Below, piece by piece: positions 37,334 through 61,232 of a DNA stretch of 64,000 nucleotides (the stretch's first letter is position 1; every line of letters starts with the position of its first letter). A model generated the notes under the pieces. That model did not search any database. It was not told where the DNA came from and saw nothing but the letters and a program-made list of their open reading frames with translations. Source of the DNA: Utricularia gibba. Its lineage: Eukaryota; Plantae; Magnoliophyta. The stretch lies in contig NEEC01000012.1 in the NCBI GenBank assembly GCA_002189035.1, positions 1,860,001 to 1,924,000 of the forward strand, read 5' to 3'. The position numbers and the translations under genes are program-made.

Positions 37334-37759
37334 AAATCTTTGCCGTGAGTTGATTGAGATGCCCGAAGCCCCGAGGTTCTCTCGGAATCCCTCCCCGCCA
37401 TGGCATATCCTGCTTCTTTTTGGTAAGGCGTGATGAATGATGACTTGGGGGACGTGTGCTGCCTGCCCTCTCCATTTTTGTGCAGCTGCATATTCATTTG
37501 TTCAAATTCATGGTGTTTTGTCTGAGTTCCTTTTCTTGTAATTACGAATCATATCAAAAGTATTTTTTTCTTCCATGGTTTACATTGCTATTGCCATCGT
37601 GAACTGCATATGCTAGATAAAGTCTTTTGGATTGTAAAAAGCAATGGGAATCTTACACTTGCTGCAACAGTGCGACAAATGAAAGAATGTGTTGGTGAGC
37701 TACATGGCTAAATGTGTGATCCAGATTAACAGGAAAGGGGATTTATTTGTCCCTCAGGC

Positions 37760-39115: not shown

Positions 39116-42100
39116 CTCCCTCCTCAAGCTGGGGAGGACAAGGTCGTAGCCCAAGCTTGCCGATGATAGTAAAAAACGGTAGAGAATCTAACGCCTTAGT
39201 GAAGACATCAGCAAGTTGCTGTTTAGAAGGCGTGTAGATGGGTAAAAGAAATCCAAGCTTGAATTGATCACGAACGACGTGGCAATTGATTTCTATGTGC
39301 TTCGTCCGTTCGTGGAAAACAGGATTTGCGGTAATGTGAATTGCAGACTAGTTATCGTAGTGCAAGGGAATAGGGAGAACGAAAGTCTCACCAAGTGACT
39401 GCGTCAATTGAACCAGAAAGATAACTCAATAAGCGTTTCAGAGCGATCCAATGTTCAGACCCCGGACAATGAACATACTGAGATAGCTGCTGCACCACAA
39501 AGTAAGATCAGGCCTTGTAAAATTCAAGTAAAGCAGCCGACCAACTAACCCACGATATTTCTCAACACAGATGGGATTAGAAACAGTATTGGCCGAGAAC
39601 TTAAAACTCTGTGGCATGGGAGTGACCACACAAGGAGATAAATCAGCACTCAAAGGCTGAAGAATATCCGAAATATACCGTCGCTGAGATAAGAAAAGCC
39701 CATTAGCAATTCGTGTGAGCTCAATCCCTAAGAAAAAAGTAGCGTCGCCAAGATCCTTGATAGTGAATTTGGCATGCAGATCTGTTTTAAGCTGGGTAAT
39801 GGCATCCAAGGATGAGCCCCCGAGAAGGATGTCATCCACGTAAATCAGAACAACGAGAATAGATATCGCATCCCGCCGCACAAATAGGTAAGTGTCCGAG
39901 GGGCATTGAGAGAAACCCAAGCTTACCAGAAATCGACTAATTTCAAGGTTCCACTGGCGCGAGGCTTGCTTAAGCCCCTATAAGGATTTACGCAGCAGGC
40001 AGACATCTCCCTCCTTGCACCCATATCCTTCTGGAGGGTGCATGTAGATCTCTTCATCCAGGAATCCATGAAGGAAGGCGTTGTTAACATCAATTTGATG
40101 CAGAACCCATGAATGCTTCGCAGTAAGCGCCAACAACAGGCGAATGGAAGTAGCCTTAGCAACCGGTGCAAAGCTGTCATGGTAATCCACCCCTTCCACT
40201 TGTGTATAACCTTTGGCTACCAAGCGTGCCTTGAACCGATCAAGATGCCCATCAGATAATCGCTTGATTTTGTAAACCCATTTGCAACCGATGGCACGCT
40301 TACCCTTTGGCAAAGGAACAACCCTCCATGTTTCATTGTGCTCAAGAGCCTTAATCTCTTGAGACGTAGCATCACACCAGTGGGGGAATCGTGATGCCTC
40401 TCTATATGTGCGAGGTTCAGAAAGGAGACACGGCTCTTCAGGGTCTCCCGCATCAACCTAAAAAATGTGGTAGTCACGCAACCAGTCAGGTGGGATATGG
40501 CTCCTCTGACTTCGCCTAAGTCCCGGATCAGGAGAAGGCACCAAACACGGCGAGGAGTGGTGTGTCCCACCGGACAGAGGGGGAGCATGTGTATTAATGA
40601 TGGGGTGCTCTGAATGATTAGACCCGTCAGGGAGAGAAGCATCAAGCACATCCGCTAGGTGCATCCCTCATAGCATCACGCATACCAAATAGGGACTCAG
40701 GCGGCATAGCAGCAACTGGGACCTCTGGGTCATCATTATCAGGAAACACTAATGGCAATAAAACCTCATGAGAGTCCAGATCGTGAATAACACTCTTCAT
40801 CGGAAATACTCCTTCATAAAATTTGACGTCGCGGGAAATGAACATTGTATGCGTCTCAAGATCATAGAGCTTATACCCCTTATGATCCATGGGGTATCCG
40901 ATGAAAATGCATTTGCACGCCCGACAAGCTAGCTTATTGCCCCGAGAATCCAAATTTGCTGCAAAAGCCAAACAACCAAATATCCGCATATGAGCTAGTG
41001 CTGGGGGTTGGTGCATAAGAACTTCAAAAGGAGTCACCCAATCAAGCACGGAGGAAGGGATGCGATTTATAATGTAAGTTGCAGTGAGAAGAGCTTCACC
41101 CCAAAAATTCTTCGGTACCCCTGATTGAAACATTAATGCTCGCGTAACCTCCAAGAGGTGGCGATGCTTCCGTTCAACTCTGGCGTTCTGCTGTGACCGC
41201 TGAGTGCATGAATATTGATGGCGAATCCCCTTCTGTGCACACAAATTCTGCAAGGCAGAGCTCATAAACTCTCCTCCTTTATCCGTGCGAAGATGCTTAG
41301 TAGTTAGGCGAAAATGATTTTCTACATACGCAAGAAAGGCTTGTATGTAATTATCAATCCCAATCTTATCGCGCAATAAGAAAGTCCATGTAGTGCGGGT
41401 ATGATCGTCCACAATGGTGAGGAAGTATCGCATTCCATTAAAGGTGGTAAGTTCATATGGCCCCCATAAATCACAGCGGAGCAGGTGGAATGCATGTGGC
41501 GCACGGGAAGTGCTCAAAGGGAAGGGGACTTTCTGAAATCGAGCATATTCGCAGACATCACAAGGAACACTAGATAAGCCACATGGAACATGCATATACT
41601 GAGATTTAGAATTTGAAATGTGCCCAAGGTAGCAGTGCCATAGAAGACGTTTATCACCACTATGCAAGGCATCAGCAAAGAAACACATAGAAGGTAGTAC
41701 CACATTAACAAGACTATTGCGGATAACAGGTTTGTGGGCTACTGCAGCATATGCCGAAATCACACTTGATTGGAACGACCTCTTGTCCACCACATAGAGG
41801 CCATCTCGCACACGACCAACCCCTAGGACCTCATGGGTATCCGGGTCCTGCACCAAGCAATGGTGACTAGAAAACACAACATTGATTCCAACATCATCTG
41901 CAAGCCTCTTGACAGATAGCAAGTTGTACTTAAAACCAGGCAGATACAGGACATTCTGTAGTTTAATCCGCCTAGTTGATGGTATGCTACCCATATGACT
42001 CACCGGGACAAACTGTCCATTAGGTAGAGTCACTTGTAAGTGAGCCACCTGCTTCATGCCCTCAAAACTGATGGTGGAACAACTAATATGGGTAGTGGCT

Positions 42101-43255
42101 CCAGAATCAATAATCCACTCCCATGGATTACATACAAAGCATGCAGATGCAGTGTTCATGACTCCTAACACCTGTGGAATCACCATGAAATTTATGATGA
42201 AGCAAGTCCCATGGGGAATGTGGAGAAACGAACAGGAAAGGTTCCTGGGAAACTGAAGAAAGGAAAGATGAAGGGCAACAGGCCGTGCTTGGATGTGAAG
42301 GAAGAAGCGGGCCACTCTTCAAAGGCCCATAAGGTGAACCACACCTACTGAGGCCCCATCCCAACCTGCCTACCCAACAATCAGCAACGGTTGCCTACTC
42401 TGGAGTTGAGGAATAGGCAACGGTCACAAAATCCGAACTCTATAAAAGATACACTCCGCTGTAGATCAAAAAGTAGGGTAATAACCCAAACTCCACAGAC
42501 ATCATTCCACAAATCTGTTCTTCTTTTCTACAACTCTTCAACACCATGGGTGACGTACCTGAGAATTCCAGTTTGGACAGATTGATTGATGGAGAAGATG
42601 ACATGTGACCTTCAGGGTTTTCCCTTGAGGTAGAAGGTGGAATGCTACCCATCAACTTTGTCAATTCTCGCTGAATGACCTGTAAACGATCAGTGGAGTA
42701 TGAGATATCAGAAGCGTATGAGAGAGACTCATCCAAAGGGGTCTCAACACAATGCACAGCAGGTCGATAAGAATTATAAGACACAGGCTGACGAGGTGCC
42801 AACGGCGCTTGTTGATACTGATTCCAAGGGGGGCGAGACTGCTCACAATGAGGTGATTGTGATTTCACATCTTGGGAACCATATTTACCCCCTTTTTTGC
42901 GCCACCAAGGGGGAGGTTCTTTGACCGTGAAGCAATTGTCAGATAGATGACCCTGCTTATTACAAATGGTACAGAACCTGTTATCACGACGCTATCCTGG
43001 TCCGGGATGTGTCCCAGGGTTGGGCTCTCGAATGGACTTAATCATCATGGCTGAGTTGGTGTGGATATTCACCACCTCAGGTGTCCTTCGACACATCTGT
43101 TGCTCAACATTCAAGAGGGCCCCATATGCCTTGGACACTATCATGAATTCATCCATGGCTAGTATCTGATTACGAATCCCATCAAATTTCGGGTGGAGAC
43201 CCAGCAGAAATTGAGTGAGCTTAGTTGATCCAAAGAATCTATCGGCATTTACTGG
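38884..43255 (-). mobile_element. Ty1/copia LTR retrotransposon (Ale/RE1-like), degenerate, truncated within gag, 3' LTR only
   Basis: Gag remnant KLTQFLLGL..IRNQIL; protease WIIDSGATTHI; integrase CDLWGPY/YFLTIVDDHTRTTW/QQNARVERKHRHLLEV; RT AIGCKWVYKIK/RFKARLVAKGYTQVEG/QIDVNNAFLHG/LIYVDDILLGG; RNase H ADVFTKAL; PPT gaggagggag. The frames are interrupted. Confidence 0.95.
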
Positions 43256-44000
43256 TATATTGCATTTGTGCCTTGGGATGAATTTCTCATCATAATGCAA
43301 GCAAAGGTTTTTGGCCTTTGGTTCTTCGAATTCCTTCCGTGGTAGCTGTTTTAGGGTCATTGATATGAGATTCTCCTTTTTTTGTAGTTTGGTTTTCTAT
43401 TTGGGTAGTCTCATTGTCCTGATGGTTTACATTCAAGTGTTCTTTTTCTCTATTTATGTTGATTTTGCCTACTCCTTTGAAGGTTCCGTTCTTGCTGTGT
43501 AGTAATAGCACCAAGCTCGTGGCATCTATAGTGTTGCAAGGATTCTAGAGTGTAACTTGATTCTTAAGGTCATCGGGTAATCCATTCAAGTATATGCGCA
43601 TTTTGTTCATGGGATCCAAGCTTTGAACTGTGACTGCCATTTCCCAGAAGCAATGGTTGTAGTGTTCTAAGCTTCCTATTATAGATAGCTTTGCGAAATG
43701 CATCATATTGGATGTCCAATTCTAAGAACCAAACTGTAGATTTCAAAATCTTTTGAACTCATGACATTTCAAACCGGGAGATTATTGCTCTGTAACCATA
43801 TAAACCAGTTTTGTGCTAAACCCTCTTGATACATTAGATCACACGGTGGTTGTTCTCATCATCTGTGCTATGATGTTTGAATGCATGCTCACATCTGTAA
43901 AGCCATCCTAAGGGGTCGGATTCACCATTATATTTGGGCACTTATTGACGTAATTGGTTGATTCTGGGTTTCCAGTAGTAAAATCTTTCCGATTGTATAA
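43255..44000 (-). mobile_element. Degenerate Ty3/gypsy gag-like remnant inside the left arm (mirror at 59170-59898)
   Basis: Broken frames include EFEEPKAKNLCLHYDEKFIPRHKC, a decayed gypsy gag knuckle-like (LC..CDEKF...HKC) segment. A more diverged third copy lies at about 53495-54110. Confidence 0.55.
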
Positions 44001-44137
44001 AGCAATGGGAAAACTTACACTTGCTGTAAGAGTGTGACAAATCAAAGAATGTGTTGTTAGCTAGCTACATGGGCAAATCTGTGCCATGGAGAAGGGATCC
44101 AGAAGAAGAGGAAAGGGGATTTATTTGTCCCTCAGGC

Positions 44138-45462
44138 TCAGGAGAAGGGGGACGGCAAGGCTGTGCAGTTGAGGGCGGCGAGAGTGGGCTGGATGAGGCT
44201 CTGCTCGATGCGGACGGCGATCTCCTGTGTGAAGTGGATGCCGTCCCAAAACATGTGGTGTGCGGGTTCCGAGCACACGGGCACTCCTGCAGTCCCGCAG
44301 AACCTGTTGCTGCTGTAGTCGTACTCTCCTCCGATGCCGCAGCACGCCTTCAGGGCGGTGTCCGCGTGTCCTTCTGCAACACACGCCATAACCAGTCAAA
44401 AATGGGAACGGCGGGTGTATCTATGAATGCATGTACGTACCTTGATTCAATCTGTCGAGGACCTGCAAGAAGCCCTCGTCGAAGGCTCCGTAGATGAGTG
44501 TGACGTTGGGGAACTCCTGCCCCAAATTGTCGATGGCTCGCCGGAGATAATTGTTCTTCAGGTTGATGAGCCTGTTGACGCTGTTGAGGCATCCCAAACG
44601 ATCGTACGCCGCGGGATCATCGGAGGGCATGGCGGAGAGGATGTAGGGGAAGCAGCCGAGGGGAGCGCTTGCGGGGATGACGATGAGCCTGGCGCCCATG
44701 GTGATGAGCTCCTGCAAGGCAAGCAGGGTTTGGTATCAGTATGATTTCAGGAGACTTCAACATAAATTGAAGGAGTGATGAATTAGTTAGTTACCCTGGT
44801 TGCCTTGATTTGTTCTCTGGTGATGGGGCCGATGTAGGACTGTGCTTCCTGGAGGGTCCTCCCTTGCGTCAAGGCGTATCCGATGTCATTTGCCTCGAGG
44901 TCCCCCAAGAGCACGAGCGAATTGGCCAGCCTGTTGGGGATGCAGTCGGCCGAGGATGAGCCGCACACCGACCGGAGGTGGGTTCTGAACCATTCGAGCT
45001 GGGTGGTGAGGGAAACTGCGTAGGGCGGGATCCGAATGCCCCGGCGAGAGAAGAACCCGTGGTCCATCACCGGACTCCTGGCGACCGAAAAGATTACGCC
45101 GTTGCTGGAATTGGACTTCTCCGACAGGTAAGGAACGATCTCCGGGAACCCGAAGTCAAAGGCGGCGAAGTCGAAATCAACGAGGCCGTCGGACCATCGC
45201 CCGTTGGGGGTGCCGGGATAAGTCCGGCCGTAGGGGGCACGCGTGGCTGGCAATGATCTCCCCATGGCTGGACAAGGACGGAGTTGCCGACGTCGGTGGC
45301 GCCGTCGCCGAAGTGGTAAAGGTAGGGAAACGGGCACACGGGGTTTGAAGGCAAGTGATTACTACTTCTGCTGCTGCTGCTGTTACCCGTCGTCTGGGAG
45401 GAAGCGAGAGCACAGGCACTGGCGAGTGCGACGAGCAGCAAGAGCCGAGAGAGGGAGCCCAT
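44138..45462 (-). CDS. GDSL copy B: secreted AAE-like GDSL/SGNH-fold protein lacking the catalytic Ser; 1-bp frameshift at about 45258-45263 (G4 vs G5), possibly a consensus error
   Basis: Signal peptide MGSLSRLLLLVALASACALA, YHFGDGATDVGN, GRWSDG, LGDLEANDI, ACCGIGG, WDGIHFT. The ORF splits at QPWG-DHC, where mirror copy E reads QPWGRSL. Confidence 0.88.
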
Positions 45463-45536
45463 GACGATGATGATGATGCTGTGTATGGGAATGCCGAATG
45501 ATGATGATGGGTCTCTGGTCGCAGAGAGCGCGCCTC

Positions 45537-45731
45537 TTTATAGGCTGCCGGAGAATGGAATTGGAGATGTCAAAGGCCATTTCACAGTTACGTGTTGATG
45601 AATTCAACATACGGCGTCGTGTGCTCCTCACGCGTACGGCTTCCATTCAAAGACCACCTAACCCCTGCACGCCACGTGCACTCAGTCCATATTAAATTTC
45701 TAATATTCTTATTTTACTGTATCTGACGTCA
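45537..45731 (-). promoter_or_regulatory. Proximal promoter of GDSL B (mirror 57422-57616 for E): TATA box, G-box CACGTG, palindromic TGACGTCA
   Basis: TATAAA 45537-45542 (minus strand) about 75 bp upstream of the ATG, CACGTG 45673-45678, TGACGTCA 45724-45731. Motif matches only. Confidence 0.5.
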
Positions 45732-47039
45732 CTACAAAATTAGTAAAAGATGAATAATGAACATCACCATTTTTCTCATGCATATATCTAATTTTTTATT
45801 TATTCATTAAATCATTTCGTGTAATAATTAGGAAATAAAAGTGGATGATGCCATGGCCATGTCATCCCAAATGGCAACCCTAGTGGTTGACGAGAATTCC
45901 CCATCCAGTCATGGGCGGCTAAATGGGCAATTCGCCCTTCTGCCCAGTGCTCCAGTTCTCCCCTAGGCCCACGTACTGTATCTGATCATTTATTGGGTTA
46001 TTTTAAATAATAACTATTTTAATTTATTTTAAATATGATTTTTCAAATTTTTTTTAATATTAATTATCACAGGATATCGTGGGATATTTATCAGATTTAA
46101 CATTGTATGTATTTTAAAGTTATCGCGTGTTTATTAAGTATGCTGTTGTACCCTATAAGATATTATGGTATAATATCTTTACAGAGTGTTATTAGATATC
46201 GTTGAATGCGATTGAACGAAATCGAATATAGTAAATTTTAAAATAATTTAGCTTAGAAAAATTGTAAATAAATATAAAAAATTGAAGCACATATAAATAT
46301 TTATTTTAAAAAATATTTTCAAACCTTAAAAATCAATTATTTTTGAAATACAGTTTTTAAAAATACATTTATATGTTTTGTAAACAATTTTTAAAATATA
46401 TATTTAATATTTTTATTAAGTGATAAAATCTTTTTTATTATTTTCTTATAAACATTATCTAATAATGAATATAAATATAAAATACTACATGATTTATATA
46501 AAAATGAAGTAAATGTATTTTGGTTATTTTTATCAATATATGCATATTTTTATTAATTTAACTCATATTTATTAATGTAAGATAGTTATTATTCAAACAA
46601 ATATTAAAAGATGGTGAAATTTGAAAATTTTGATGTTGTAGTATGATTATTCTTCAAAATAATCCATTGTTTATTTGATTTTCTACTGTACCATCATTTA
46701 TAATCATAAATAAATGCCATGATATTTGGAAGACTATAGCATTGAAGACCATAGTATTCATGAGCTTTTATAATATTTATAAAAGTATCTATTTTTAATT
46801 AAAAAAATTAGAAATAGAAATGTGAGACGATGGTTCCGATACAAAATGCTCAAAAGCAGATGCACGTTGTTTAGAAGGGGGGAAAAGACAGCGGTGAGAT
46901 TTGTATTTATTAATGTTTGAATCACTCATCGTATAAAATTCATACGCGGGCTGAAGACAAAGAAAAACACGACGAGAGGAGTAGAAAGTCAGCGGTCCAA
47001 TGAAAACGGAAAAGTTGACATTTTCCGTTCCCGGCAGCC

Positions 47040-47046
47040 TATAAAT
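47040..47046 (+). promoter_or_regulatory. TATA box of GDSL C (mirror 56107-56113 for D)
   Basis: cTATAAATag about 75 bp upstream of the ATG, in a ggcagcctataaa context shared with B/E. Confidence 0.6.
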
Positions 47047-47118
47047 AGGCGCGCTGTCTGCGACCAGAAACCATCATCATCATTCGGCATTCCCTTACAC
47101 AGCATCATCATCATCCTC

Positions 47119-48440
47119 ATGGGCTCTCTCTCTCGGCTCTTGCTGCTCGTGGCACTCGCCAGTGCCTTTGCTCTCGCTTCCTCCCAGACGACGGGTAACA
47201 GCAGCAGTAGTAGTAATCAATTGCCTGCAAACCCCGTGTGCCCGTTTCCCTATCTTTACCACTTCGGCGACGGCGCCACCGACGTCGGCAACTCCGTCCT
47301 TGTCCAGCCATGGGGGAGATCATTGCCCGCCACGCGTGCCCCCTACGGCCGGACTTATCCCGGCACCCCCAACGGGCGATGGTCCGACGGCCTCGTTGAT
47401 TTTGACTTCGCCGCCTTTGACTTCGGGTTCCCGGAGATCGTTCCTTACCTGTCGGAGAGGTCCAATTCCAGCAACGGCGTCATCTTTTCGGTCGCCAGGA
47501 GTCCGGTGATGGACCACGGGTTCTTCTCTCGCCGGGGCATTCGGATCCCGCCCTACGCAGTTTCCCTCACCACCCAGCTCGAATGGTTCAGAACCCACCT
47601 CCGGTCGGTGTGCGGCTCATCCTCGGCCGACTGCATCCCCAACAGGCTGGCCAATTCGCTCGTGCTCTTGGGGGACCTCGAGGCAAATGACATCGGATAC
47701 GCCTTGACGCAAGGGAGAACCCTCCAGGAAGCGCAGTCCTACATCGGCCCCATCACCAGAGAACAAATCAAGGCCACCAGGGTAACTAACTAACCAATTC
47801 ATTTCTGTCCAGCTCTCCTCCATGTTCTTCAGAGCATACTGATACCAACCCCCGCTTGCCTTGCAGGAGCTCATCACCATGGGCGCCAGGCTCATCGTCA
47901 TCCCCGCAAGTGCTCCCCTCGGCTGCTCCCCCTACATCCTCTCCGCCATGCCCTCCGATGATCCCGCGGCGTACGACCGTTTGGGATGCCTCAACAGCGT
48001 CAACAGACTCATCAACCTGAAGAACAATTATCTCCGGCGAGGCATCAACAGTTTGGGGCAGGAGTTCCCCAACGTCACCCTCATCTACGGAGCCTTCGAC
48101 GAGGGCTTCTTGCAGGTCCTCGACAGATTGAATCAAGGTACGTACATGCATACATAGATACACCCGCCGTTCCCATTTTTGACTGGTTATGGCGTGTGTT
48201 ACAGAGGGACACGCGGACACCGCCCTGAAGGCGTGCTGCGGCATCGGAGGAGAGTACGACTACAGCAGCAACAGGTTCTGCGGGACTGCAGGAGTGCCCG
48301 TGTGCTCGGACCCCGCACACCACATGTTTTGGGATGGCATCCACTTCACACAGGAGATCGCCGTCCGCATCGAGCAGAGCCTCATCCAGCCCACCCTCGC
48401 CGCCCTCAACTGCACAGCCTTGCCGTCCCCCTTCTCCTGA
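47119..48440 (+). CDS. GDSL copy C: intact ~389-aa secreted AAE-like GDSL/SGNH-fold protein lacking the catalytic Ser; exons 47119-47781, 47867-48137, 48205-48440
   Basis: GT-AG introns splice in frame to give CPFPYLYHFGDGATDVGN...PYGRTYPGTPNGRWSDG...QLEWFRTHLRSVCG...GDLEANDIGY...ATR|ELITMGAR...|EGHADTALKACCGIGGEYDY...CGTAGVPVCSDPAHHMFWDGIHFTQE. This is colinear with Rauvolfia acetylajmalan esterase as I recall it. Confidence 0.95.
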
Positions 48441-48606
48441 GTCTGAGGGACAAACAAATCCCCTTTCCTGTTCTCCTGGATCCCTTCCCCATTTGCCCCT
48501 GTAGCTAGCTAACAACACATTCTTTGATTTGTTCAGCGTTGACAGTAACCACAAATGCATTATCAGTTTCTTCGAAACGTGTCGTGTGTTATGCACCCGA
48601 TTCACA

Positions 48607-51600
48607 GAGATAATTACTTATCACACCAACGGTTAGATAGAGAATTCCAAGATGTAGCCAACTTTGTACTTAGTGCTTCATTTTATTTACACATCATCAT
48701 TTTTTATTTAATTTTTAATTCAATTAATATTTTATATTTATATTTTACACGAAAATTAAAAAAAATAATATATTATATTTATTTCTTTTTATATTATATT
48801 ATAATCAATTTGATCATCACAATAATACATATGTAACATTGATATTTTCAGATTTTAACATTAAAATTCTAAAAAATTTTAAAATTAAAAAACGAAGCAA
48901 TAGTACACATGTGATACTGACATGTTCAGATTTTAACATTAAAATTGTAAAAAAGTTTGGTGTAATATTAAATTCATTTGTTTTTTTTCCAATTCAAAAT
49001 TCAAAAACGAAGTATATAATGAAATACGCATCTCATATCATCATTCTTTCTCCTTTTCTTCCTCTTACAATTTCAATGGCTTCCTCTTGAATTGAGATCC
49101 AATTGTAATGGGGAGGTAACTTGTTTTATGGAAACAATGGTGTGTGCTATGATTCAGCACCACGATTTTCTGCTTCGATTATTCGAGATACCTCAATATC
49201 CATGCTGCTGTCGTTGATTTATGAAGTTATGCAACTATCTTCAAGTGAGTATTCTATTACCATCATTGTGAATTATGTTGCTATGGATTCAACAATGGGT
49301 TTTCAGAGGTACTGACATCCTCTTGATCAAACGGATGTTAGTTTGTCTTTGATTTTTAATCAAAGTCGTATAGTTTCAAGTGTTGATATGTATATTAGTG
49401 CAACTCCAAGCTTCATGAATTTGATCATTCAACAACACACTGGTATGTAATTTTTTTTTCCAAATAACATTTATTATTATTAGTTTTATATTATATTTAG
49501 GATATGTTTTTTGAATTCATATGATTAATTTGTGCTAATGATATATTTTATGTTTTATTTCTAGTTAATGTTGGAGAAGCATCAACCAATCATAATAATC
49601 CATGCACTTTACCAACATATCACAATTCTTCATCACCAGAATCACCTTGTGATGAAAACATATTATGGGATTTGGATCATTTATGTGAGAAAGATGGTAC
49701 TGAGCAAGCTGAAAACGAAATGATGCAAGAAGTTATTCCATCTCCACTTTCTTCAAGTGATGATGATGATGAACAAATAGAAGTCAGGTTTTATGAAAGC
49801 GATGTGGCAATGGAAATTCCAACAGCATTTGAGTTTGAGAAGACTTTAAACTTCTATGATGGGACAAACGGTGATCCATGCAAGGGGGTTTTCTTCAAAG
49901 ATAAAACTTCAATGAAGGAAGCATTGAATTATTATTGTATCACGAAGCTGAAAATGCCTTTTCATGTTGAGAAGAGCAATAACAAGCAGTATGAGATAAA
50001 CTGTATCAACCGAAATGCAACACCTCCATGTGAATGGCGTGTTAGAGTATGGAATAGCAGTGTCACTCAGTTTTGGACTGTGACACAATATGAGGGGCCT
50101 CATACTTGCTTTTCTAACAGTTCCAAAACTATTAGAAATGATAGCATTACTAGCAAATTTGTGTGTCTTCATATCATGAACAAGGTTAAAGCAAATCCAT
50201 GGATGTGTGTTTCTGATGTGATTGATGATATTAATGAAGTTTATCATTTCAAGATATCATATAAGCTTGGATGGACTGCTATTAGGCGTGATATTATGCA
50301 TATGTATGGTACTTGGGAGGAATCGAAGACAAAGCTCCCTTCTTATTTGTTATCTATTAAGGAATCTAACCCAAATAATTCATTTTTATTATTTTACAAA
50401 TATTGATGTTTGTTTACTAACATATTTGTTTTTATCACAGATACTATATTTGAATATGAGAATCTTCGTTCCCATGATGGCAAGCAAATGCTACACCATA
50501 TATTTTGGGCTTTTGGATCATGCGTGCATGGTTTTAGGTATTGTCGTCCAGTTATTACTGTTGATGGAACACATCTATATGCAGGATATAGATATCACCT
50601 TCTAATAGGATGCACACTTGATTGTGACCGTACTATAATTCCACTTGCATTTGCTATTGTTGAGGAAGAATCTTATGAATTCTGCTATTGGTTTTTTAAC
50701 CTTTTAGTTAAGCATATCGTGAAAGGACATCGTATTCGTCTAGTAACTGACCGTGGTGCAGGATTATTATCTGCAATTAAGGATATACCTGCTTTCAATG
50801 AGCCTATGGGAGATTACAGATTTTGTATGCAACATCTACTTGCAAATTTCATATCCCATTTCAGGTCGAAACATTTGGTTGATTTATTTTGGGAAGTTGC
50901 CTTAGGTTCAAAAAAGAAAAGTTTCAGATAGCTATGGAGAAAATCAGAAATAAGAATGAGGCAGCATTTGAGTATCTCCATGAAATCGATCCAAAGCGAT
51001 GAACATTATCATATGATGATGGCATTAGGTAACTTGAAATGGTATAATTTTATTAATATTATTACTATGTTAACCTTATATTTCTTTTTTTGTAGATGTG
51101 GTGTGCATACCACAAGTATCTCTGAATTATTAAACAGTGTTTTACGTGGGGCACAAAGATTACTTCCAAAAGCTCTTGTTGATGCCACTTTCGAGAGATG
51201 TGTTAAGATTTTCACAAATAGTAAAGGGGTCAATTGCTTACTCCATATTCACTATCTGTTTATAGGAAATGTGATGACAAATCAACCAACTACAGGATCA
51301 AGAAATACAATGCAGAGAAAATGAGTGACACTGTGATGTCTCTGAGTAAAAATTCTAGAAAAAACAAATATTATTATATTATTTATTTGACAGATTTGAC
51401 ATGTACTTGTGGAGAGTGGCAGCAAAAAGTTATTCCATGTTCACATGCCATTCAGGTAAGAATTATCTTTTGATATATCATGTGATTTGTAATATCATAA
51501 CAATTGTTAACTTTATTCCTCTCTTAGGTGTACAAGGAATTCAATGAAGATACAAGTTATTATATTTCAAAATATTATCAAGTGAAGATCCTTGCGAAAA

Positions 51601-52142
51601 TATACAAAAGACAATTTAATCCACCAATTCCTGAGAGTGGATGAGGTGCATCTCCATTTGATCTTGTTCACAATCCAGCAATAAGATTGAATATCAGAGG
51701 TTGTGCTAGATCAACACAATTTTCAAGTAGTTTAACTCATATACATTCGAAGAGAAGATCAAGATTTAATTAATTTTAATTTTAGATATTTTCGAGAATG
51801 CGTTTTCGAGACTTTGGGATTTTAATTTGAATAATATTGCTTATGCATTTATTAAATATTTTATTGCATAATTTTTGCATATATTTAATTATTATGTTTT
51901 AATTTATTGATTAATATAAATATTGTAATATAACTATATTGTAATATATTATATTTAAATTTTTCAATATAAAATATGATTAAATATATATTTTTTTTTA
52001 GAAAAGTATATATTTATATGATTTTTTGTACAAAAATAAATAATAAATAATGATGTGGAAATGAAATGTACCATTATAAGACAAAGTTGGCTACATATTG
52101 AAATTCTTTCTCCAATTGTTGATGTGATAAGGAATTTGCCCC
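48607..52142 (+). mobile_element. Mutator-like (MULE/MuDR) element, degenerate, with diverged TIRs and 9-bp TSD
   Basis: Transposase pieces FRYCRPVITVDGTHLYAGY...PLAFAIVEEE...VTDRGAGL...RFCMQHLLANF and SWIM-like CTCGEWQQKVIPCSHA, with stops. TIRs about 100 bp at 48607-48710 and 52035-52142 share ttatcaca and atgtagccaactttgt. TSD cgattcaca (48598-48606) / cgattgaca (52143-52151). Confidence 0.9.
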
Positions 52143-53099
52143 CGATTGACATATGTTGGATACGGGATATGAGTGATAAATATTAATAAGTACATTAAAA
52201 AATGAAAATTTAAAATTGAAATTCAATATTCCACATCTCATTTAATATTTTTTTATTTTTTTATTTATATTAAAAATAATAAAAAAGATAATTACCTTTT
52301 ATATAAATAAAATATTTATTATATTATTTGTAATTTATCAACAAAATTATATTTCATTCGATATATATGTGTATATATATAGATGTAACAACTCAATCAA
52401 GGCAACCTAAGGAACTGTACTATGAATAACATTAGCAACACAAACATATTCTACAAAAACCAATAACTTCGAAAATACATGTGATTGTTTACTCCAGATA
52501 CAACGGACCTCAATTATAATGCTTCTCTAGGTAGCCTTAGGCACGAGTTAGCACTTGAGTCACAAGTCAAATTTGATGAGTCAGGATAATAAAGATAACC
52601 CGTCCAGTCACGAGTCAAAAAGTTATACATTTGACTCGACTCTTATCATGAGTTATTTGGAGTCGAATATTTAAAATACAAACACTGTATTTAATCTATT
52701 TAGTACTTGTCATAATTTGTGAAAAAAATAACATCACAATTTATACAGTACCATTTGTTTTCCACTCAGTGTTTTTCCATAATTTAAAAAAATCAGTAGC
52801 ACTATCTAGAATCACATATACACTAAACCGATGCTTGTCATAACTTGTGAGATATAACAATATTATACAACGCAATATTTGTGTTTCTTAATGCTTATCA
52901 TATATATATATATTAAAAAAATACAAGTTGACTTGGATAAAAAAATATATGATTCAGTACGAGTCAACTCAAGAGTTACTCGAATTAACTCGTACTAGGT
53001 AGTAGTGCCCATATGTAAAAAAGATGGATAATAAATTTTGTGGAGCCCAAGATTGGACACTTGTCTCCTAGAACTATTTTGTGTTTTGTGTGCCTCGTG

Positions 53100-54110
53100 A
53101 TCTGAAGGCATAGCTTGAAGAAAGTACAAAGTCTCTTCTGTGATCAACACCACGGCAGCATTGGCGCTTGGAGACATTTCTAAGAATTTAATGGGTCCTG
53201 TTACTCGTTCTTGCACCATAAATACATCACATTTGGTATAGAGCAATCTTTCTGTACCTGTGAGATGGAAGAATTGAAGGAAATGATAAAAGCTCTTCAC
53301 ACCCAAATGGAACCATGCATGACTGCTTTAGAGCAGCAATTGGAGTCTCATCGTTGGGAACCATCTGTGGAGAGCTCCAAAACTTTACTTTTTGTTGTTG
53401 TTTTTCTTGCAGAATTGCTTGTGAGAGTTCATCCTATTTTGCTATCACCAATCATGTGGGAAAACAACTCGAAATGGAGAAACATGATGCCCCTTACTAC
53501 TAGCAACCCAGAATCAACCAATTACGTGTATAAGTGCCCAAATATAATGCTGAATCCGACCCCTTAGGATGGTTAACAGATGCGAGCATGCATTCAAACA
53601 TCATAGCACACATGATGAGAACATGCACCGTATGTTCTCAAGTAGCAAGAGGGTTTAGCCCAAAACTGGTTTATATGGTTACAGAGGAATAATATCCCGG
53701 TTTGAAATGTAATGAGTTCAAAAGATTTTGAAATCTACACTTTGGTTGGTTCTTAGAATTGGGCATCAGTATGATCCATTTCGCAAATCCATTTAAGATA
53801 GGAAGCTTAGAAGACTACAACCATTGCTTCTGGGAAATGGCAGTCACGGTTCAAAACTATAGATGCCAAGACCTTGGCACTGTTACTACACAGCAAGAAC
53901 TGAACCTTCAAAAGAGTACGTAAAAATCAACATAAAAAGAGAAAAAGAACACTTGACTGTAAACTATCAGGGCAATCAGACTACCCAAATTGAAAACCAA
54001 ACCACGAAAAAAGGAGAATCAAATACCTACCATGGAAGGAATTCGAAGAACCAAAGGCCAAAAACCTTTGCTTGCATTATGATGAGAAATTCATCCTGAG
54101 GCACAAATGC
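53100..54110 (+). mobile_element. Degenerate Ty3/gypsy gag-region remnant in the spacer
   Basis: Visibly homologous but not identical to 59185-59895, and extends further 5' with a decayed MEELKEMIKALHTQME... frame. Confidence 0.5.
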
Positions 54111-54454
54111 ATGAACCTATTTTTATTTTAGAATTCATTCACAATGAATTCCAAGATGATGGGGTATTCGAGGTGCATATGTTTTTTTCGATGAAAAAGG
54201 CCTATTTCGATCAAGTAAACTTTTAGCACATGAATCAATTAATCAACCAGTTAACCGATGTAAACCAATTGATTCCCAGAACACTTCTGCTTCATCAAGA
54301 AAACAGCACATAAAAATCTTTCAGTCAACACATACTAATGCTTTCCATATTTATTTCAGAGAACTGAAACCATAAAAAGCCAGCATACTAATGCTTTCGT
54401 GGTTCATCGCAACAAATTGTTAACTTGACTTGGCGAAAAAATGGCAACCGCAGC

Positions 54455-54525
54455 TTAATTCTTGCCAGCAAGATCCTCTAAGGTAATATTCAAAGAATCA
54501 GCAGACACCTTCTTGACTGTCTCAC
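54455..54525 (-). pseudogene. Duplicated 3' tail of the DNL zinc-finger gene
   Basis: Encodes ETVKKVSADSLNITLEDLAGKN*, nearly identical to the end of the gene at 60262-60330. Its 3' flank (to about 54110) also matches 59900-60260. Confidence 0.85.
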
Positions 54526-54712
54526 CCATATCCCGTATCCAACATATGTGAATCGGGTGCATAACACACGACACGTTTCGAAGAAACTGATAATGCATTT
54601 GTGGTTACTGTCAACGCTGAACAAATCAAAGAATGTGTTGTTAGCTAGCTACAGGGGCAAATGGGGAAGGGATCCAGGAGAACAGGAAAGGGGATTTGTT
54701 TGTCCCTCAGAC

Positions 54713-56034
54713 TCAGGAGAAGGGGGACGGCAAGGCTGTGCAGTTGAGGGCGGCGAGGGTGGGCTGGATGAGGCTCTGCTCGATGCGGACGGCGATCTCC
54801 TGTGTGAAGTGGATGCCATCCCAAAACATGTGGTGTGCGGGGTCCGAGCACACGGGCACTCCTGCAGTCCCGCAGAACCTGTTGCTGCTGTAGTCGTACT
54901 CTCCTCCGATGCCGCAGCACGCCTTCAGGGCGGTGTCCGCGTGTCCCTCTGTAACACACGCCATAACCAGTCAAAAATGGGAACGGCGGGTGTATCTATG
55001 TATGCATGTACGTACCTTGATTCAATCTGTCGAGGACCTGCAAGAAGCCCTCGTCGAAGGCTCCGTAGATGAGGGTGACGTTGGGGAACTCCTGCCCCAA
55101 ACTGTTGATGCCTCGCCGGAGATAATTGTTCTTCAGGTTGATGAGTCTGTTGACGCTGTTGAGGCATCCCAAACGGTCGTACGCCGCGGGATCATCGGAG
55201 GGCATGGCGGAGAGGATGTAGGGGGAGCAGCCGAGGGGAGCACTTGCGGGGATGACGATGAGCCTGGCGCCCATGGTGATGAGCTCCTGCAAGGCAAGCG
55301 GGGGTTGGTATCAGTATGCTCTGAAGAACATGGAGGAGAGCTGGACAGAAATGAATTGGTTAGTTAGTTACCCTGGTGGCCTTGATTTGTTCTCTGGTGA
55401 TGGGGCCGATGTAGGACTGCGCTTCCTGGAGGGTTCTCCCTTGCGTCAAGGCGTATCCGATGTCATTTGCCTCGAGGTCCCCCAAGAGCACGAGCGAATT
55501 GGCCAGCCTGTTGGGGATGCAGTCGGCCGAGGATGAGCCGCACACCGACCGGAGGTGGGTTCTGAACCATTCGAGCTGGGTGGTGAGGGAAACTGCGTAG
55601 GGCGGGATCCGAATGCCCCGGCGAGAGAAGAACCCGTGGTCCATCACCGGACTCCTGGCGACCGAAAAGATGACGCCGTTGCTGGAATTGGACCTCTCCG
55701 ACAGGTAAGGAACGATCTCCGGGAACCCGAAGTCAAAGGCGGCGAAGTCAAAATCAACGAGGCCGTCGGACCATCGCCCGTTGGGGGTGCCGGGATAAGT
55801 CCGGCCGTAGGGGGCACGCGTGGCGGGCAATGATCTCCCCCATGGCTGGACAAGGACGGAGTTGCCGACGTCGGTGGCGCCGTCGCCGAAGTGGTAAAGA
55901 TAGGGAAACGGGCACACGGGGTTTGCAGGCAATTGATTACTACTACTGCTGCTGTTACCCGTCGTCTGGGAGGAAGCGAGAGCAAAGGCACTGGCGAGTG
56001 CCACGAGCAGCAAGAGCCGAGAGAGAGAGCCCAT
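54713..56034 (-). CDS. GDSL copy D: intact mirror of copy C
   Basis: ORF-track translations are identical to copy C (224-aa and 98-aa pieces and the last-exon piece), including GDG. Confidence 0.95.
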
Positions 56035-57690
56035 GAGGATGATGATGATGCTGTGTAAGGGAATGCCGAATGATGATGATGGTTTCTGGTCGCAGACAGC
56101 GCGCCTATTTATAGGCTGCCGGGAACGGAAAATGTCAACTTTTCCGTTTTCATTGGACCGCTGACTTTCTACTCCTCTCGTCGTGTTTTTCTTTGTCTTC
56201 AGCCCGCGTATGAATTTTATACGATGAGTGATTCAAACATTAATAAATACAAATCTCACCGCTGTCTTTTCCCCCCTTCTAAACAACGTGCATCTGCTTT
56301 TGAGCATTTTGTATCGGAACCATCGTCTCACATTTCTATTTCTAATTTTTTTAATTAAAAATAGATACTTTTATAAATATTATAAAAGCTCATGAATACT
56401 ATGGTCTTCAATGCTATAGTCTTCCAAATATCATGGCATTTATTTATGATTATAAATGATGGTACAGTAGAAAATCAAATAAACAATGGATTATTTTGAA
56501 GAATAATCATACTACAACATCAAAATTTTCAAATTTCACCATCTTTTAATATTTGTTTGAATAATAACTATCTTACATTAATAAATATGAGTTAAATTAA
56601 TAAAAATATGCATATATTGATAAAAATAACCAAAATACATTTACTTCATTTTTATATAAATCATGTAGTATTTTATATTTATATTCATTATTAGATAATG
56701 TTTATAAGAAAATAATAAAAAAGATTTTATCACTTAATAAAAATATTAAATATATATTTTAAAAATTGTTTACAAAACATATAAATGTATTTTTAAAAAC
56801 TGTATTTCAAAAATAATTGATTTTTAAGGTTTGAAAATATTTTTTAAAATAAATATTTATATGTGCTTCAATTTTTTATATTTATTTACAATTTTTCTAA
56901 GCTAAATTATTTTAAAATTTACTATATTCGATTTCGTTCAATCGCATTCAACGATATCTAATAACACTCTGTAAAGATATTATACCATAATATCTTATAG
57001 GGTACAACAGCATACTTAATAAACACGCGATAACTTTAAAATACATACAATGTTAAATCTGATAAATATCCCACGATATCCTGTGATAATTAATATTAAA
57101 AAAAATTTGAAAAATCATATTTAAAATAAATTAAAATAGTTATTATTTAAAATAACCCAATAAATGATCAGATACAGTACGTGGGCCTAGGGGAGAACTG
57201 GAGCACTGGGCAGAAGGGCGAATTGCCCATTTAGCCGCCCATGACTGGATGGGGAATTCTCGTCAACCACTAGGGTTGCCATTTGGGATGACATGGCCAT
57301 GGCATCATCCACTTTTATTTCCTAATTATTACACGAAATGATTTAATGAATAAATAAAAAATTAGATATATGCATGAGAAAAATGGTGATGTTCATTATT
57401 CATCTTTTACTAATTTTGTAGTGACGTCAGATACAGTAAAATAAGAATATTAGAAATTTAATATGGACTGAGTGCACGTGGCGTGCAGGGGTTAGGTGGT
57501 CTTTGAATGGAAGCCGTACGCGTGAGGAGCACACGACGCCGTATGTTGAATTCATCAACACGTAACTGTGAAATGGCCTTTGACATCTCCAATTCCATTC
57601 TCCGGCAGCCTATAAAGAGGCGCGCTCTCTGCGACCAGAGACCCATCATCATCATTCGGCATTCCCATACACAGCATCATCATCATCGTC

Positions 57691-59088
57691 ATGGGCTCCC
57701 TCTCTCGGCTCTTGCTGCTCGTCGCACTCGCCAGTGCCTGTGCTCTCGCTTCCTCCCAGACGACGGGTAACAGCAGCAGCAGCAGAAGTAGTAATCACTT
57801 GCCTTCAAACCCCGTGTGCCCGTTTCCCTACCTTTACCACTTCGGCGACGGCGCCACCGACGTCGGCAACTCCGTCCTTGTCCAGCCATGGGGGAGATCA
57901 TTGCCAGCCACGCGTGCCCCCTACGGCCGGACTTATCCCGGCACCCCCAACGGGCGATGGTCCGACGGCCTCGTTGATTTCGACTTCGCCGCCTTTGACT
58001 TCGGGTTCCCGGAGATCGTTCCTTACCTGTCGGAGAAGTCCAATTCCAGCAACGGCGTAATCTTTTCGGTCGCCAGGAGTCCGGTGATGGACCACGGGTT
58101 CTTCTCTCGCCGGGGCATTCGGATCCCGCCCTACGCAGTTTCCCTCACCACCCAGCTCGAATGGTTCAGAACCCACCTCCGGTCGGTGTGCGGCTCATCC
58201 TCGGCCGACTGCATCCCCAACAGGCTGGCCAATTCGCTCGTGCTCTTGGGGGACCTCGAGGCAAATGACATCGGATACGCCTTGACGCAAGGGAGGACCC
58301 TCCAGGAAGCACAGTCCTACATCGGCCCCATCACCAGAGAACAAATCAAGGCAACCAGGGTAACTAACTAATTCATCACTCCTTCAATTTATGTTGAAGT
58401 CTCCTGAAATCATACTGATACCAAACCCTGCTTGCCTTGCAGGAGCTCATCACCATGGGCGCCAGGCTCATCGTCATCCCCGCAAGCGCTCCCCTCGGCT
58501 GCTTCCCCTACATCCTCTCCGCCATGCCCTCCGATGATCCCGCGGCGTACGATCGTTTGGGATGCCTCAACAGCGTCAACAGGCTCATCAACCTGAAGAA
58601 CAATTATCTCCGGCGAGCCATCGACAATTTGGGGCAGGAGTTCCCCAACGTCACACTCATCTACGGAGCCTTCGACGAGGGCTTCTTGCAGGTCCTCGAC
58701 AGATTGAATCAAGGTACGTACATGCATTCATAGATACACCCGCCGTTCCCATTTTTGACTGGTTATGGCGTGTGTTGCAGAAGGACACGCGGACACCGCC
58801 CTGAAGGCGTGCTGCGGCATCGGAGGAGAGTACGACTACAGCAGCAACAGGTTCTGCGGGACTGCAGGAGTGCCCGTGTGCTCGGAACCCGCACACCACA
58901 TGTTTTGGGACGGCATCCACTTCACACAGGAGATCGCCGTCCGCATCGAGCAGAGCCTCATCCAGCCCACTCTCGCCGCCCTCAACTGCACAGCCTTGCC
59001 GTCCCCTTCTCCTGAGCCTGAGGGACAAATAAATCCCCTTTCCTCTTCTTCTGGATCCCTTCTCCATGGCACAGATTTGCCCATGTAG
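57691..59088 (+). CDS. GDSL copy E: mirror of copy B, exon 1 intact; C4 vs C5 at about 59003-59006 removes the normal stop and extends the C-terminus (possibly a consensus error)
   Basis: 226-aa first-exon ORF with YHFGDGATDVGN. The last exon ends PSPSPEPEGQINPLSSSSGSLLHGTDLPM* instead of PSPFS*. Confidence 0.9.
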
Positions 59089-60261
59089 CTAGCTAACAAC
59101 ACATTCTTTGATTTGTCACACTCTTACAGCAAGTGTAAGTTTTCCCATTGCTTTATACAATCGGAAAGATTTTACTACTGGAAACCCAGAATCAACCAAT
59201 TACGTCAATAAGTGCCCAAATATAATGGTGAATCCGACCCCTTAGGATGGCTTTACAGATGTGAGCATGCATTCAAACATCATAGCACAGATGATGAGAA
59301 CAACCACCGTGTGATCTAATGTATCAAGAGGGTTTAGCACAAAACTGGTTTATATGGTTACAGAGCAATAATCTCCCGGTTTGAAATGTCATGAGTTCAA
59401 AAGATTTTGAAATCTACAGTTTGGTTCTTAGAATTGGACATCCAATATGATGCATTTCGCAAAGCTATCTATAATAGGAAGCTTAGAACACTACAACCAT
59501 TGCTTCTGGGAAATGGCAGTCACAGTTCAAAGCTTGGATCCCATGAACAAAATGCGCATATACTTGAATGGATTACCCGATGACCTTAAGAATCAAGTTA
59601 CACTCTAGAATCCTTGCAACACTATAGATGCCACGAGCTTGGTGCTATTACTACACAGCAAGAACGGAACCTTCAAAGGAGTAGGCAAAATCAACATAAA
59701 TAGAGAAAAAGAACACTTGAATGTAAACCATCAGGACAATGAGACTACCCAAATAGAAAACCAAACTACAAAAAAAGGAGAATCTCATATCAATGACCCT
59801 AAAACAGCTACCACGGAAGGAATTCGAAGAACCAAAGGCCAAAAACCTTTGCTTGCATTATGATGAGAAATTCATCCCAAGGCACAAATGCAAGATACTA
59901 TTTTTTTCAGAATTCATTGACAATGAATTCCAAGGCGATAGGGAGGCCGAGGGGCATTTGTTTTTCAATGAAAAAGGCCTATTTCGATCAAGTAAACCGT
60001 TAACACATAAATCAATTAATCAAACCAGTTAACCGATGTAAACCAATCGATTCCAAGAACACTTCTGCTTCAACAAGAAAACAGCACATACAAATCTTAC
60101 AGTCAACACATACTAATGCTTTCCATATTTATTTCAGAGAACTGAAACCAAGAAAAAAAAAAGCCAGCATTTGACTGCAGGATCAAGAAAGCCTTATCTC
60201 ATGCTCGTCGTTCATTGCAAGAAACTGTTAACGTGGCTCGGCCAAAAATGGCCACCACAGC

Positions 60262-61232
60262 TTAATTCTTGCCAGCAAGATCCTCTAAAGTAATATTCAA
60301 AGAATCAGCAGACCCCTTCTTAACTGTCTCCCCACGAGAAGCCAAAAACTCTTCAACACTTCCTGGATCCCCAAACCATCCCAGTCGATCAGCAATCAAA
60401 TGCAGATTGTTGCACCCATCACATCTTGCGATGACAATGCCTTTGTCGTACGATTCCCTGCAAGCTGTCTTAACTGATCGTGTATCACAAACTTTGCAGG
60501 TGAACACCATTACGAAATCATGCCTTTTAGACACCTTCAGCTTTGAATTTACTGCAGTCTCTATGCTTCCTGGAGTTGAAGCAGAACTCCCAGTTCCCGA
60601 TGCTGAGCTGCAGGTTCCGGCATCTGGTTCTCGGTGGGCAAGAGCAGTGTTGGATTCAGCAGGAGAGTGACATCTCCTTGTATACTGTCTATTGGTGTAA
60701 GGAAAATACGGTGACGAAGTACCAATCCATGAGATATCTGCAGCAGAAGATTTTCTCTAAAGTTTAAGGGAAAGTAATTGAAAGCGTTACTTGCATTTCA
60801 AATAAGTCTTAACCCTGCTAATTCCCGATACTCTAACATAAACCAGTGAACTTAGAGTGGACCTAAACTGTAACACTAACTGCCACAGCTCGAATGCACG
60901 CAATGATATAAAATAAGCCAAAATGAGCATATAAAATTCGATTCCATGAATCATGCTGATTTTCACTAAGCTTCATACATTTATCTCAGCTATAAATATT
61001 CAGAACCTTAAATTAACCCTAATGCAGATCAAATTGCATCCCCCAGTCCGTTCACTAAATCAAAATACAAACTTAACCAAACCCCAACTTCCGAAAAGGC
61101 AAACAAACCCATATATAAATTGCCATACAGACGTGTGACTTGTGAGAAAAGGATGCGACGTGGGTCACCTCTAGAAAGCCGAATTGGAGGAGATTTTGAA
61201 GCCAGGAGAGAGAGAACCCGACGAGCCGCCAT
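60262..61232 (-). CDS. DNL-type zinc finger protein (Zim17/Tim15/Hep1-like mitochondrial Hsp70 escort), 2 exons
   Basis: Presequence-like MAARRVLSLLASKSPPIRLSR splices in frame to ...RHDFVMVFTCKVCDTRSVKTACRESYDKGIVIARCDGCNNLHLIADRLGWFG...; zf-DNL CxxC..CxxC motif present. Confidence 0.93.

Follow-up and report, generated by a model that had tools for sequence, protein, structure and literature searches.

A Mutator-like element at the inner edge of one arm of a near-identical GDSL gene palindrome in Utricularia gibba probably predates the present identity of the arms

How can two gene-bearing inverted repeats be identical up to the very base at which a damaged transposon begins, when that transposon lies beside only one of them? 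The question is raised by a 64,000-nucleotide stretch of Utricularia gibba DNA (GenBank assembly GCA_002189035.1, contig NEEC01000012.1, positions 1,860,001 to 1,924,000 of the forward strand), which is called the window here and whose own numbering is used throughout. The window holds a palindrome, a 16.6-kb mirror-image duplication of GDSL lipase-like genes. Its left arm, arm C, abuts a defective Mutator-like element (MULE), and its right arm, arm D, has the corresponding site uninterrupted. The explanation that best accounts for the locus, and probably the correct one, is that the arms are old inverted paralogs, that the MULE inserted into one of them, and that the arms were homogenised up to the MULE afterwards. 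The features on which the argument turns are the following, where TSD stands for target-site duplication and orphan for the short piece of arm sequence stranded beyond the MULE.

43255-48606, plus strand: arm C, 5,352 bp, delimited by inverted repeat finding and by BLAST and MAFFT against arm D
54547-59898, minus strand: arm D, 5,352 bp, mirroring arm C
48607-52142, plus strand: defective MuDR-type MULE, 3,536 bp, flush against arm C
48598-48606, plus strand: left TSD, cgattcaca, preceded by gcacc; the final 9 bp of arm identity
52143-52151, plus strand: right TSD, cgattgaca, 8/9 matching, with G at 52148 against C in the other copies
52152-52176, plus strand: C-side orphan; 52152-52171 match the reverse complement of 54527-54546 at 20/20 positions, and 52172-52176 form an ambiguous 5-bp zone
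54522-54555, minus strand: D-side empty site, with junction zone 54522-54526, orphan 54527-54546 and single target site 54547-54555

Alignment of arm C to arm D by BLAST and MAFFT over 5,351 bases reveals one substitution and two 1-bp indels, a closer agreement than the near-identity claimed in the first-pass annotation. The sole substitution (43259/59894) lies 5 bp inside the outer end, and the indels are differences in the length of a G-run (44147) and of a C-run (45259/57894). There are 0 substitutions over 5,347 bp of the arms, which places the 95% upper bound at 0.07%. The two inverted arms, more than 99% identical, flank a unique spacer of 5,940 bp, or 2,345 bp once the MULE, the right TSD and the orphans are subtracted. 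Each arm carries two head-to-head GDSL-like genes, G1 and G2, which are 95.7% alike over 1.5 kb. The GC content of the arms is 46.5%, compared to 29.9% for the MULE. The outer end of the arms closes with one mismatch followed by a 4-bp match, much as the inner junction zone does.

The letters and coordinates that the first-pass annotation had quoted for the insertion site, namely gcacc on the C side, both TSDs, the MULE, the 25-bp orphan and the empty site in D, are all correct. The left TSD is identical to the single target-site copy in arm D, and the right TSD together with the orphan differs from the D site at 2 of 34 bp, positions 52148 and 52171. Exact matches to the orphan's first 20 bp are found at just two places in the window, 52152-52171 on the plus strand and 54527-54546 on the minus strand, and the chance expectation for this is 0 even with 3 mismatches allowed. 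The five letters that follow are less clear. Zone 54522-54526 fits a segment designated X'' (described below) at 4/5 positions and the C orphan equally well at 4/5, and the D letter at 54526, opposite 52171, is the X'' letter; the mismatch at 52171/54526 may be a junction effect and not a substitution. Since this mismatch falls within the ambiguous zone, the firm orphan is 20 bp long and free of mismatches, and only the TSD mismatch is firm. The proposal that inverted homology continues for 25 bp past the MULE is thus sound for 20 bp, and the proposed count of two mismatches in 34 bp is right, with only the one at 52148 to be relied on.

Set against 1 difference in 5,350 bp of the arms, 2 in 34 gives a Fisher p of 1e-4, whereas the more cautious 1 in 29 gives p = 0.011 with a 95% range of 0.09-18% for the mismatch rate. 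At the arm upper bound of 0.07%, a mismatch in the 9-bp TSD would have p = 0.006, and two mismatches in 34 bp p = 3e-4. The filled and the empty site together show a normal insertion into sequence that was present as two inverted copies. Because arm D keeps the uninterrupted site, the site must have been present twice at the time of the MULE insertion.

The MULE is bounded by long, imperfect terminal inverted repeats (TIRs) and encodes a recognisable but dead transposase.

48607-48805 (approximately): left TIR of the MULE
51938-52142 (approximately): right TIR of the MULE

Alignment of the TIRs (48612-48805 with 52136-51938) gives 71-73% identity over 200 bp and about 80% over the first 100 bp, corresponding to a Kimura two-parameter distance (K2P) of 0.36; the right and left termini disagree at 5-6 of their first 12 positions. 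The transposase exons span about 49570-51700 and match PF03108 (DBD_Tnp_Mut, E = 9e-6), PF10551 (MULE, E = 1e-9) and PF04434 (SWIM, E = 8e-7). In the three-frame translation, TGA stands at two tryptophan positions (51001, 51640), and there are at least two frameshifts (near 50909 and 51226). Membership in the Mutator superfamily is supported by the TSD with its empty site, TIRs of at least about 100 bp, the MuDR-type domains and a multi-copy family. The 9-bp length of the TSD, the imperfection of the long TIRs, the deletion derivatives and the paralogous empty site are likewise as in the MuDR/MULE superfamily; the present copy is dead, with its 2 nonsense codons and at least 2 frameshifts.

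The family status of the MULE was evaluated with the contigs of four public sequencing runs under the same species label, all of them low-coverage contig sets, aligned to positions 48577-54576 (6,000 letters) at 90% likeness or more.

Run X4: 4,761 contigs; summed depth about 1,000-3,400 over the MULE and 0-70 over the spacer
Run X5: 617 contigs; summed depth 140-424 over the MULE and 0-50 over the spacer
Run X3: 198 contigs; summed depth 9-68 over the MULE and about 0 over the spacer
Run X1: 198 contigs; summed depth 5-47 over the MULE and 1-11 over the spacer

The MULE exceeds the spacer in summed depth by a factor of 3 to more than 100 across the four runs. This excess, together with the many internal-deletion joints, implies a large family, and the element has tens to hundreds of relatives. 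It is noted that family abundance varies greatly among runs carrying the same species label. Internally deleted derivatives are seen in runs X4 and X5, with joints 48779>51044, 49499>51765 and 49511>52016, as are foldback forms that join one TIR to the other (48649/52069, 48717/52033).

The present copy is not a fresh one. The longest aligned family contigs differ from it by 2-10%, and in run X4 the contigs grade from 703 at 99% or more through 1,640 at 95-99% to 2,418 at 90-95%, with no separate near-identical class. All contigs in the four runs differ from it at a set of private letters (49089, 49338, 50623, 51484, 51801 and others). Most family contigs have an extra A after 50909, a 1-bp loss in the present copy, so that at least the first frameshift is absent from most of the family; a few have about 25 extra letters at 51226 that the present copy lacks.

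The first-pass annotation had taken the decayed TIRs and the stop codons of the MULE as signs of its age, and had proposed comparing arm divergence with TIR divergence. That comparison was run and yields no usable clock. Each of the two TIRs, taken separately, is matched by relatives at 90% or more, and therefore the 29% difference between the TIRs is a trait of the family and not decay in place. Had the difference arisen in place, 32 matches among the 34 flank bases would have p = 0.001; TIR-versus-TIR divergence was rejected as a clock on this ground, a K2P of 0.36 being incompatible with 1-2 differences in 34 flank bases. The stop codons do not date the insertion either. What is left of the suggested internal clock for concerted evolution is the TSD mismatch, firm in itself, and a single tick with so wide a 95% range makes a very coarse clock. 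The suggested order of events (duplication, MULE insertion, arm reset) is still the best-supported reading, although neither the TIR argument nor the 34-bp argument carries it.

A better yardstick of age than the 34-bp flank is found in the spacer, where part of the outer region of arm D is present a third time.

52177-53489, strand not assigned: unique spacer part, AT-rich on the left, resembling the end of a long terminal repeat (LTR) on the right (to about 53450), with a degenerate primer-binding site at 53453-53464
53490-54526, plus strand: X', a diverged direct duplicate of X'' (59178-60333)

Segment X'' comprises the outer 720 bp of arm D and 435 bp beyond it. Identity between X' and X'' is 91.4% inside the arms (K2P 0.091) and 89.1% outside them (404 aligned bases, K2P 0.118). 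X' terminates at 54526, midway in a truncated duplicate of a DNL zinc-finger gene's last exon, and therefore 54522-54526 is a rearrangement junction. The homology between C and D ends at 54522-54527 and that between X' and X'' at 54526, within 5 bp of each other; for independent events to share this breakpoint would be a coincidence of about 10 bp in several kilobases. Considering this one shared breakpoint, we propose that one event both duplicated the unit starting at 54527 and gave rise to X' and the junction, and that C and D may descend from the two copies. The C arm plus spacer would then keep the ancestral left flank, and the arms would be as old as the divergence of X' from X''. It should be mentioned that the truncated exon (54455-54526) runs in frame into the orphan and the arm end, giving an open reading frame (ORF) of 47 amino acids on the minus strand.

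The architecture to be explained consists of three copies of 59178-59898, two copies of 59899-60333 and two of the gene pair. In one candidate history, 54527-60333 was duplicated in tandem and an inversion with a staggered break came next; this reproduces both order and copy numbers. It predicts that the LTR and primer-binding-site end at 53450-53489 once ran directly into the copia element that ends at 43254, and orientation and order fit; against it, about 600 bp of gag are missing, and the break must coincide with an older boundary at 59174-59178. A second candidate fits as well as the first: two-switch replication, after which 59178-59898 entered arm C by one-ended copying.

No homolog of the unique spacer part was found within the window, and run X1 contigs cover 52491-54351 with 0-1 differences. 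Contigs of other copies diverge at 53440 into a primer-binding sequence of the tRNA-Met type, from which the right part of the spacer is seen to resemble a 5' LTR followed by a degenerate primer-binding site. This LTR end is cut off 25 bp later, where X' starts, and its orientation would fit the 5'-truncated copia (39438-43254) if the intervening segment were inverted. A hAT-like miniature inverted-repeat transposable element noticed by eye at about 52536-52995 was dropped, as it had no support from a repeat finder.

The junctions themselves are seen in read-derived contigs. Among 16 sampled 31-letter words over the D junction (54430-54660), run X7, which may be the source sample, has 16/16, run X6 a fraction of 0.94, run X3 0.44 and run X5 1/16. 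The junction between the unique spacer part and X' is spanned by a run X1 contig covering 52749-53843 with 1 difference. Over the right MULE junction, a 486-nt contig of run X3 covers 51936-52241 with 2 substitutions (99%), a 322-nt contig of run X5 has 14 substitutions and 2 gaps (about 95%), and a 231-nt contig of run X4 has 18 substitutions (about 91%). These bridging contigs extend from the right end of the MULE across the TSD and the orphan into the spacer, of which they cover the first 55-65 bp. An unrelated flank could not be aligned at 90%, and therefore the filled site has relatives that are 5-10% diverged. They are either orthologs from diverged lineages or paralogous copies, and are suggestive of an old filled site. 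Spacer contigs of run X5 are 95-98% alike; this, with the single D-junction word, fits a diverged lineage, it being noted that the spacer is partly an LTR-like repeat. Homolog searches found none for a 55-aa ORF across the right junction or for a 244-aa transposase ORF, exact look-ups of ORFs across the left junction and the D junction returned no record, and a metagenome scan for the 29-base site pattern gave no match.

How, then, would the present structure have come about? On the preferred explanation the arms would be old inverted paralogs and not a fresh duplication. The MULE would have inserted into the 3' flank of G2 in arm C, 25-34 bp from the inner end of the homology, with D staying empty, and the arms would later have been made identical by intrachromosomal copying between them. 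The 3.5-kb heterology of the MULE would block such copying, so that identity ends at the adjoining base and the 34 bp beyond are left to drift. The ordering follows from this contrast: the arms are identical as far as the MULE, whereas drift is seen in the TSD on its other side, and therefore the identity would have been imposed after the insertion. The age of the structure is supported by the relatives diverged by 2-10%, the private lesions of the present copy, the 91-95% bridging contigs and X' at K = 0.09-0.12, none of which dates the arms directly.

The position of the MULE can potentially be accounted for in the same way. Recombination needs some minimum of homology. Where an insertion is flanked on either side by kilobases of homology, conversion could erase it or copy it across, but not where only 25-34 bp lie on its inner side; we infer that the MULE survives in one arm only because the inner homology is too short for conversion to erase or transfer it. 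The chance that an insertion at random would land 34 bp or less from an arm end is 1.3%, whereas survivorship under active conversion makes an edge position of the sole asymmetric insertion the expected one. Whether copying was recurrent or occurred once is less readily decided. Recurrent arm-to-arm gene conversion is a tentative choice, and is favoured by an identity that meets both homology limits to the base and by the position argument just given. One long-tract event of break-induced copying, from D into C, is a more doubtful mode; it is favoured by the zero substitutions and by the 720 bp of X in arm C that are joined non-homologously to the truncated copia at 43254/43255, a join of the sort expected from one-ended, break-induced copying outward from D.

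Several observations weigh against homogenisation of old arms. Beyond the MULE there is a single firm mismatch, that in the TSD, and the firm orphan matches at 20/20, as a very young insertion would give. G1 and G2 within each arm are 4.3% apart even though they lie closer together than arms C and D, so that conversion is not pervasive; with the large arms identical, homogenisation would have to be selective for the pair that is already identical. No signature of GC-biased conversion is present in the comparison of the arm X copy with X' (15 AT-to-GC against 18 GC-to-AT changes, small numbers) or of G2 with the third GDSL copy described below. The link from X' to the origin of the palindrome is drawn from one shared breakpoint, and the architecture needs an extra assumption beyond one simple event. 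The run X4 and X5 bridging contigs are known at the level of identity, not of letters, and may be paralogs, the spacer being partly repetitive. Read support covers three junctions (the D junction, that of the unique spacer part with X', and the right MULE junction), so that the arms themselves may owe their identity to polishing, and the two homopolymer indels resemble long-read errors.

The first of these points is the starting place of an alternative in which the palindrome, either newly duplicated or homogenised by then, was identical beforehand and a defective MULE of a degenerate family was moved in trans into arm C very recently; the TSD mismatch would then be a later point mutation or a gap-filling error, and the orphan simply the last 20-25 bp of the arm. 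An identical firm orphan and the ambiguity of the second mismatch are what this would predict, and a large family with many internally deleted derivatives (48779>51044, 49511>52016 in run X4), of which 15-30% of aligned contigs are at least 99% alike, could possibly include a near-identical master copy. We nevertheless consider it unlikely. A TSD mismatch would have to arise within the time allowed by 0/5,347 arm differences (p of about 0.006), the longest relatives are 2-10% away from a copy with lesions of its own, and the bridging contigs at 91-95% imply an old filled site. Both the coincidence of the insertion with the edge of identity, at 1.3%, and the breakpoint in common with X' would be left unexplained. 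The caution about polishing leads to another alternative, that the arms truly differ or that one is mis-assembled, with the consensus having equalised them up to the MULE. The only internal differences between the arms are homopolymer lengths typical of a long-read consensus. Each arm, however, has distinct flanks on both sides, the D junction is present in contigs from the short-read era (runs X7, X6 and X3, as given above), and the right MULE junction and the junction of the unique spacer part with X' are covered. The TSD and orphan, moreover, are proof of a C-type copy next to the MULE, and a collapse normally gives one copy, not two identical ones; an artefact of this kind is improbable.

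A recent inverted duplication copied from a MULE-free homologous chromosome or sister chromatid would make arm D new and homogenisation unneeded. It would account for an empty site with perfect arms, and the 4-bp near-matches at the junctions are possible microhomology. In that case, however, the junction at 54526 would be young, and all products of the event would be expected to be near-identical; instead X' is 89-91% identical to its partner and the TSD is mismatched. The 9-12% divergence of X' from X'' includes the 404 bases outside the arms, which makes a young arm D hard to reconcile with the data. It would further need a polymorphic insertion on alleles otherwise identical over 5.3 kb, and appears very improbable. 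Homogenisation of old arms after the insertion is the reading to which the comparison of these alternatives returns.

Palindromes maintained by conversion are textbook knowledge for mammalian sex chromosomes, and those of the human and ape Y chromosome, P1-P8, are kept alike by arm-to-arm gene conversion, as reportedly described by Rozen and colleagues in 2003. The locus resembles the Y palindromes in its gene-bearing inverted arms, its unique spacer, an identity above 99.9% that ends sharply at the spacer, and arms that would be far older than their divergence suggests. It differs from them in scale (5.35 kb versus 9 kb to 1.45 Mb) and in its plant host with no sex-chromosome evidence, and its age is drawn from a one-arm transposon and a third diverged copy instead of orthologous palindromes in sister species. 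Multi-kilobase conversion tracts have been described in human palindrome P6 (Hallast et al. 2013, PMC3723533). Rearrangements in primate X palindromes cluster in the spacers and inner arms, around the centre of symmetry (Jackson et al. 2021, PMC8327919); similarly, the inner arm beyond the MULE measures only 20-25 bp here and the spacer consists of transposon pieces and a duplicated fragment. GC-biased conversion is recorded for primate X palindromes (PMC8981503), whereas such a signature is not detectable in the 15 versus 18 changes counted here.

The closest plant parallel is in willow (Salix purpurea), where arms of the W palindromes are alike though old by transposon dating and gene conversion was inferred and confirmed against a sister species (Zhou et al. 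2020, PMC7023750). Both are plant palindromes with highly alike arms despite transposon evidence of age. The willow case differs in lying in a non-recombining sex-determining region, with 20-kb arms dated by LTR pairs, whereas the marker here is a single DNA transposon at the edge of an arm in a GDSL gene cluster. With regard to origin, the combination of direct (X'/X'') and inverted (C/D) copies with 4-bp near-matches recalls duplications by replication-based template switching (duplication-triplication/inverted-duplication, DUP-TRP/INV-DUP, and fold-back models; PMC10766186). Unlike the classical DUP-TRP/INV-DUP product, the copies are here in the order inverted, direct, direct, and the event is old, with microhomology not reliably readable. 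The locus is probably a palindrome maintained by conversion, which is a known process and not a new kind of system.

Small palindromes that carry genes are less well documented for ordinary plant gene clusters. In the present case the one-arm transposon serves as a natural time marker, by which the arms would predate the MULE and their present identity would postdate it, and the 1-kb unconverted third copy, X', gives a rough age of the structure. If confirmed, the locus could be used to estimate the speed and the minimal homology of copy-correction between inverted duplicates in plants, a process that affects the concerted evolution of tandem and inverted gene families, here those of secreted GDSL-like proteins. 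It is one locus with one firm clock mismatch, and its quantitative value is therefore low. A broader possibility, which we regard as rather speculative, is that this genome homogenises gene-bearing inverted repeats so efficiently that asymmetric insertions persist only where the homology on one side is below the minimum (here 25-34 bp). If true, one-arm transposons at arm edges and unconverted third copies such as X' could calibrate the rate and the minimal homology of intrachromosomal conversion in a plant autosomal gene cluster.

The genes carried by the arms, and a further copy outside them, are arranged as follows.

43255-43981: X part of arm C
44037-45560, minus strand: G1 of arm C
47023-48532, plus strand: G2 of arm C, followed by 74 bp of 3' flank
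54621-56130: G2' of arm D
57593-59116: G1' of arm D
59178-59898: part of X'' in arm D
37618-38883, minus strand: copy A, a third GDSL copy, truncated at its 5' end and lying outside the palindrome

G1 and G2 in arm C are separated by a shared intergenic region. Each arm thereby holds a smaller palindrome of G1 and G2 (44037-45560 versus 47023-48532), with 1.5-kb arms and a 1.46-kb spacer. In arm C, the G2 reading frame runs from the ATG at 47119 to the stop codon at 48438-48440, the MULE lying about 165 bp past the stop. GDSL esterases from Orobanchaceae and Paulownia are the closest proteins in the database (67-69% identity) and point to a Lamiales host. G2 (47119-48440) and its copies read FGDGATDVGN where the family has GDS; since this motif reads GDG, the catalytic serine is replaced by glycine. 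The difference between 45259 (4 C) and 57894 (5 C) falls in exon 1 of G1, which is split into two overlapping frames in arm C (ORFs 45094-45462 and 44783-45337) and is a single ORF of 226 aa in arm D (57691-58371). This is either a true inactivating change or a homopolymer error of the assembly.

Copy A is 98.0% identical to G2 and 94.7% to G1. Its 3' flank and four informative sites as far as 37758 are of the G1 type, and nearly all sites from 37805 onward are of the G2 type. It is a recombinant or converted mosaic of G1 and G2 and shows that paralogs in the cluster exchange sequence, a point in favour of the preferred explanation.

Outside the arms, the two flanks of the palindrome were found to be unrelated in window alignments, with no homology of the C outer flank to the D outer flank.

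39438-43254, minus strand: outer flank of arm C, consisting of a Ty1/copia element truncated at its 5' end (mid-gag, integrase, reverse transcriptase; Pfam rve, gag_pre-integrs, SH3_retrovirus, RVT_2)
59899-60534, minus strand: outer flank of arm D, made up of the remainder of X'' (to 60333) and the last exon of the DNL zinc-finger gene
60262-60534, minus strand: intact last exon of the DNL zinc-finger gene (zf-DNL, E = 5e-26)

The truncated copia abuts arm C directly at 43254/43255. Compared to the transposons that adjoin them, the exons of the GDSL-like genes are strikingly GC-rich.

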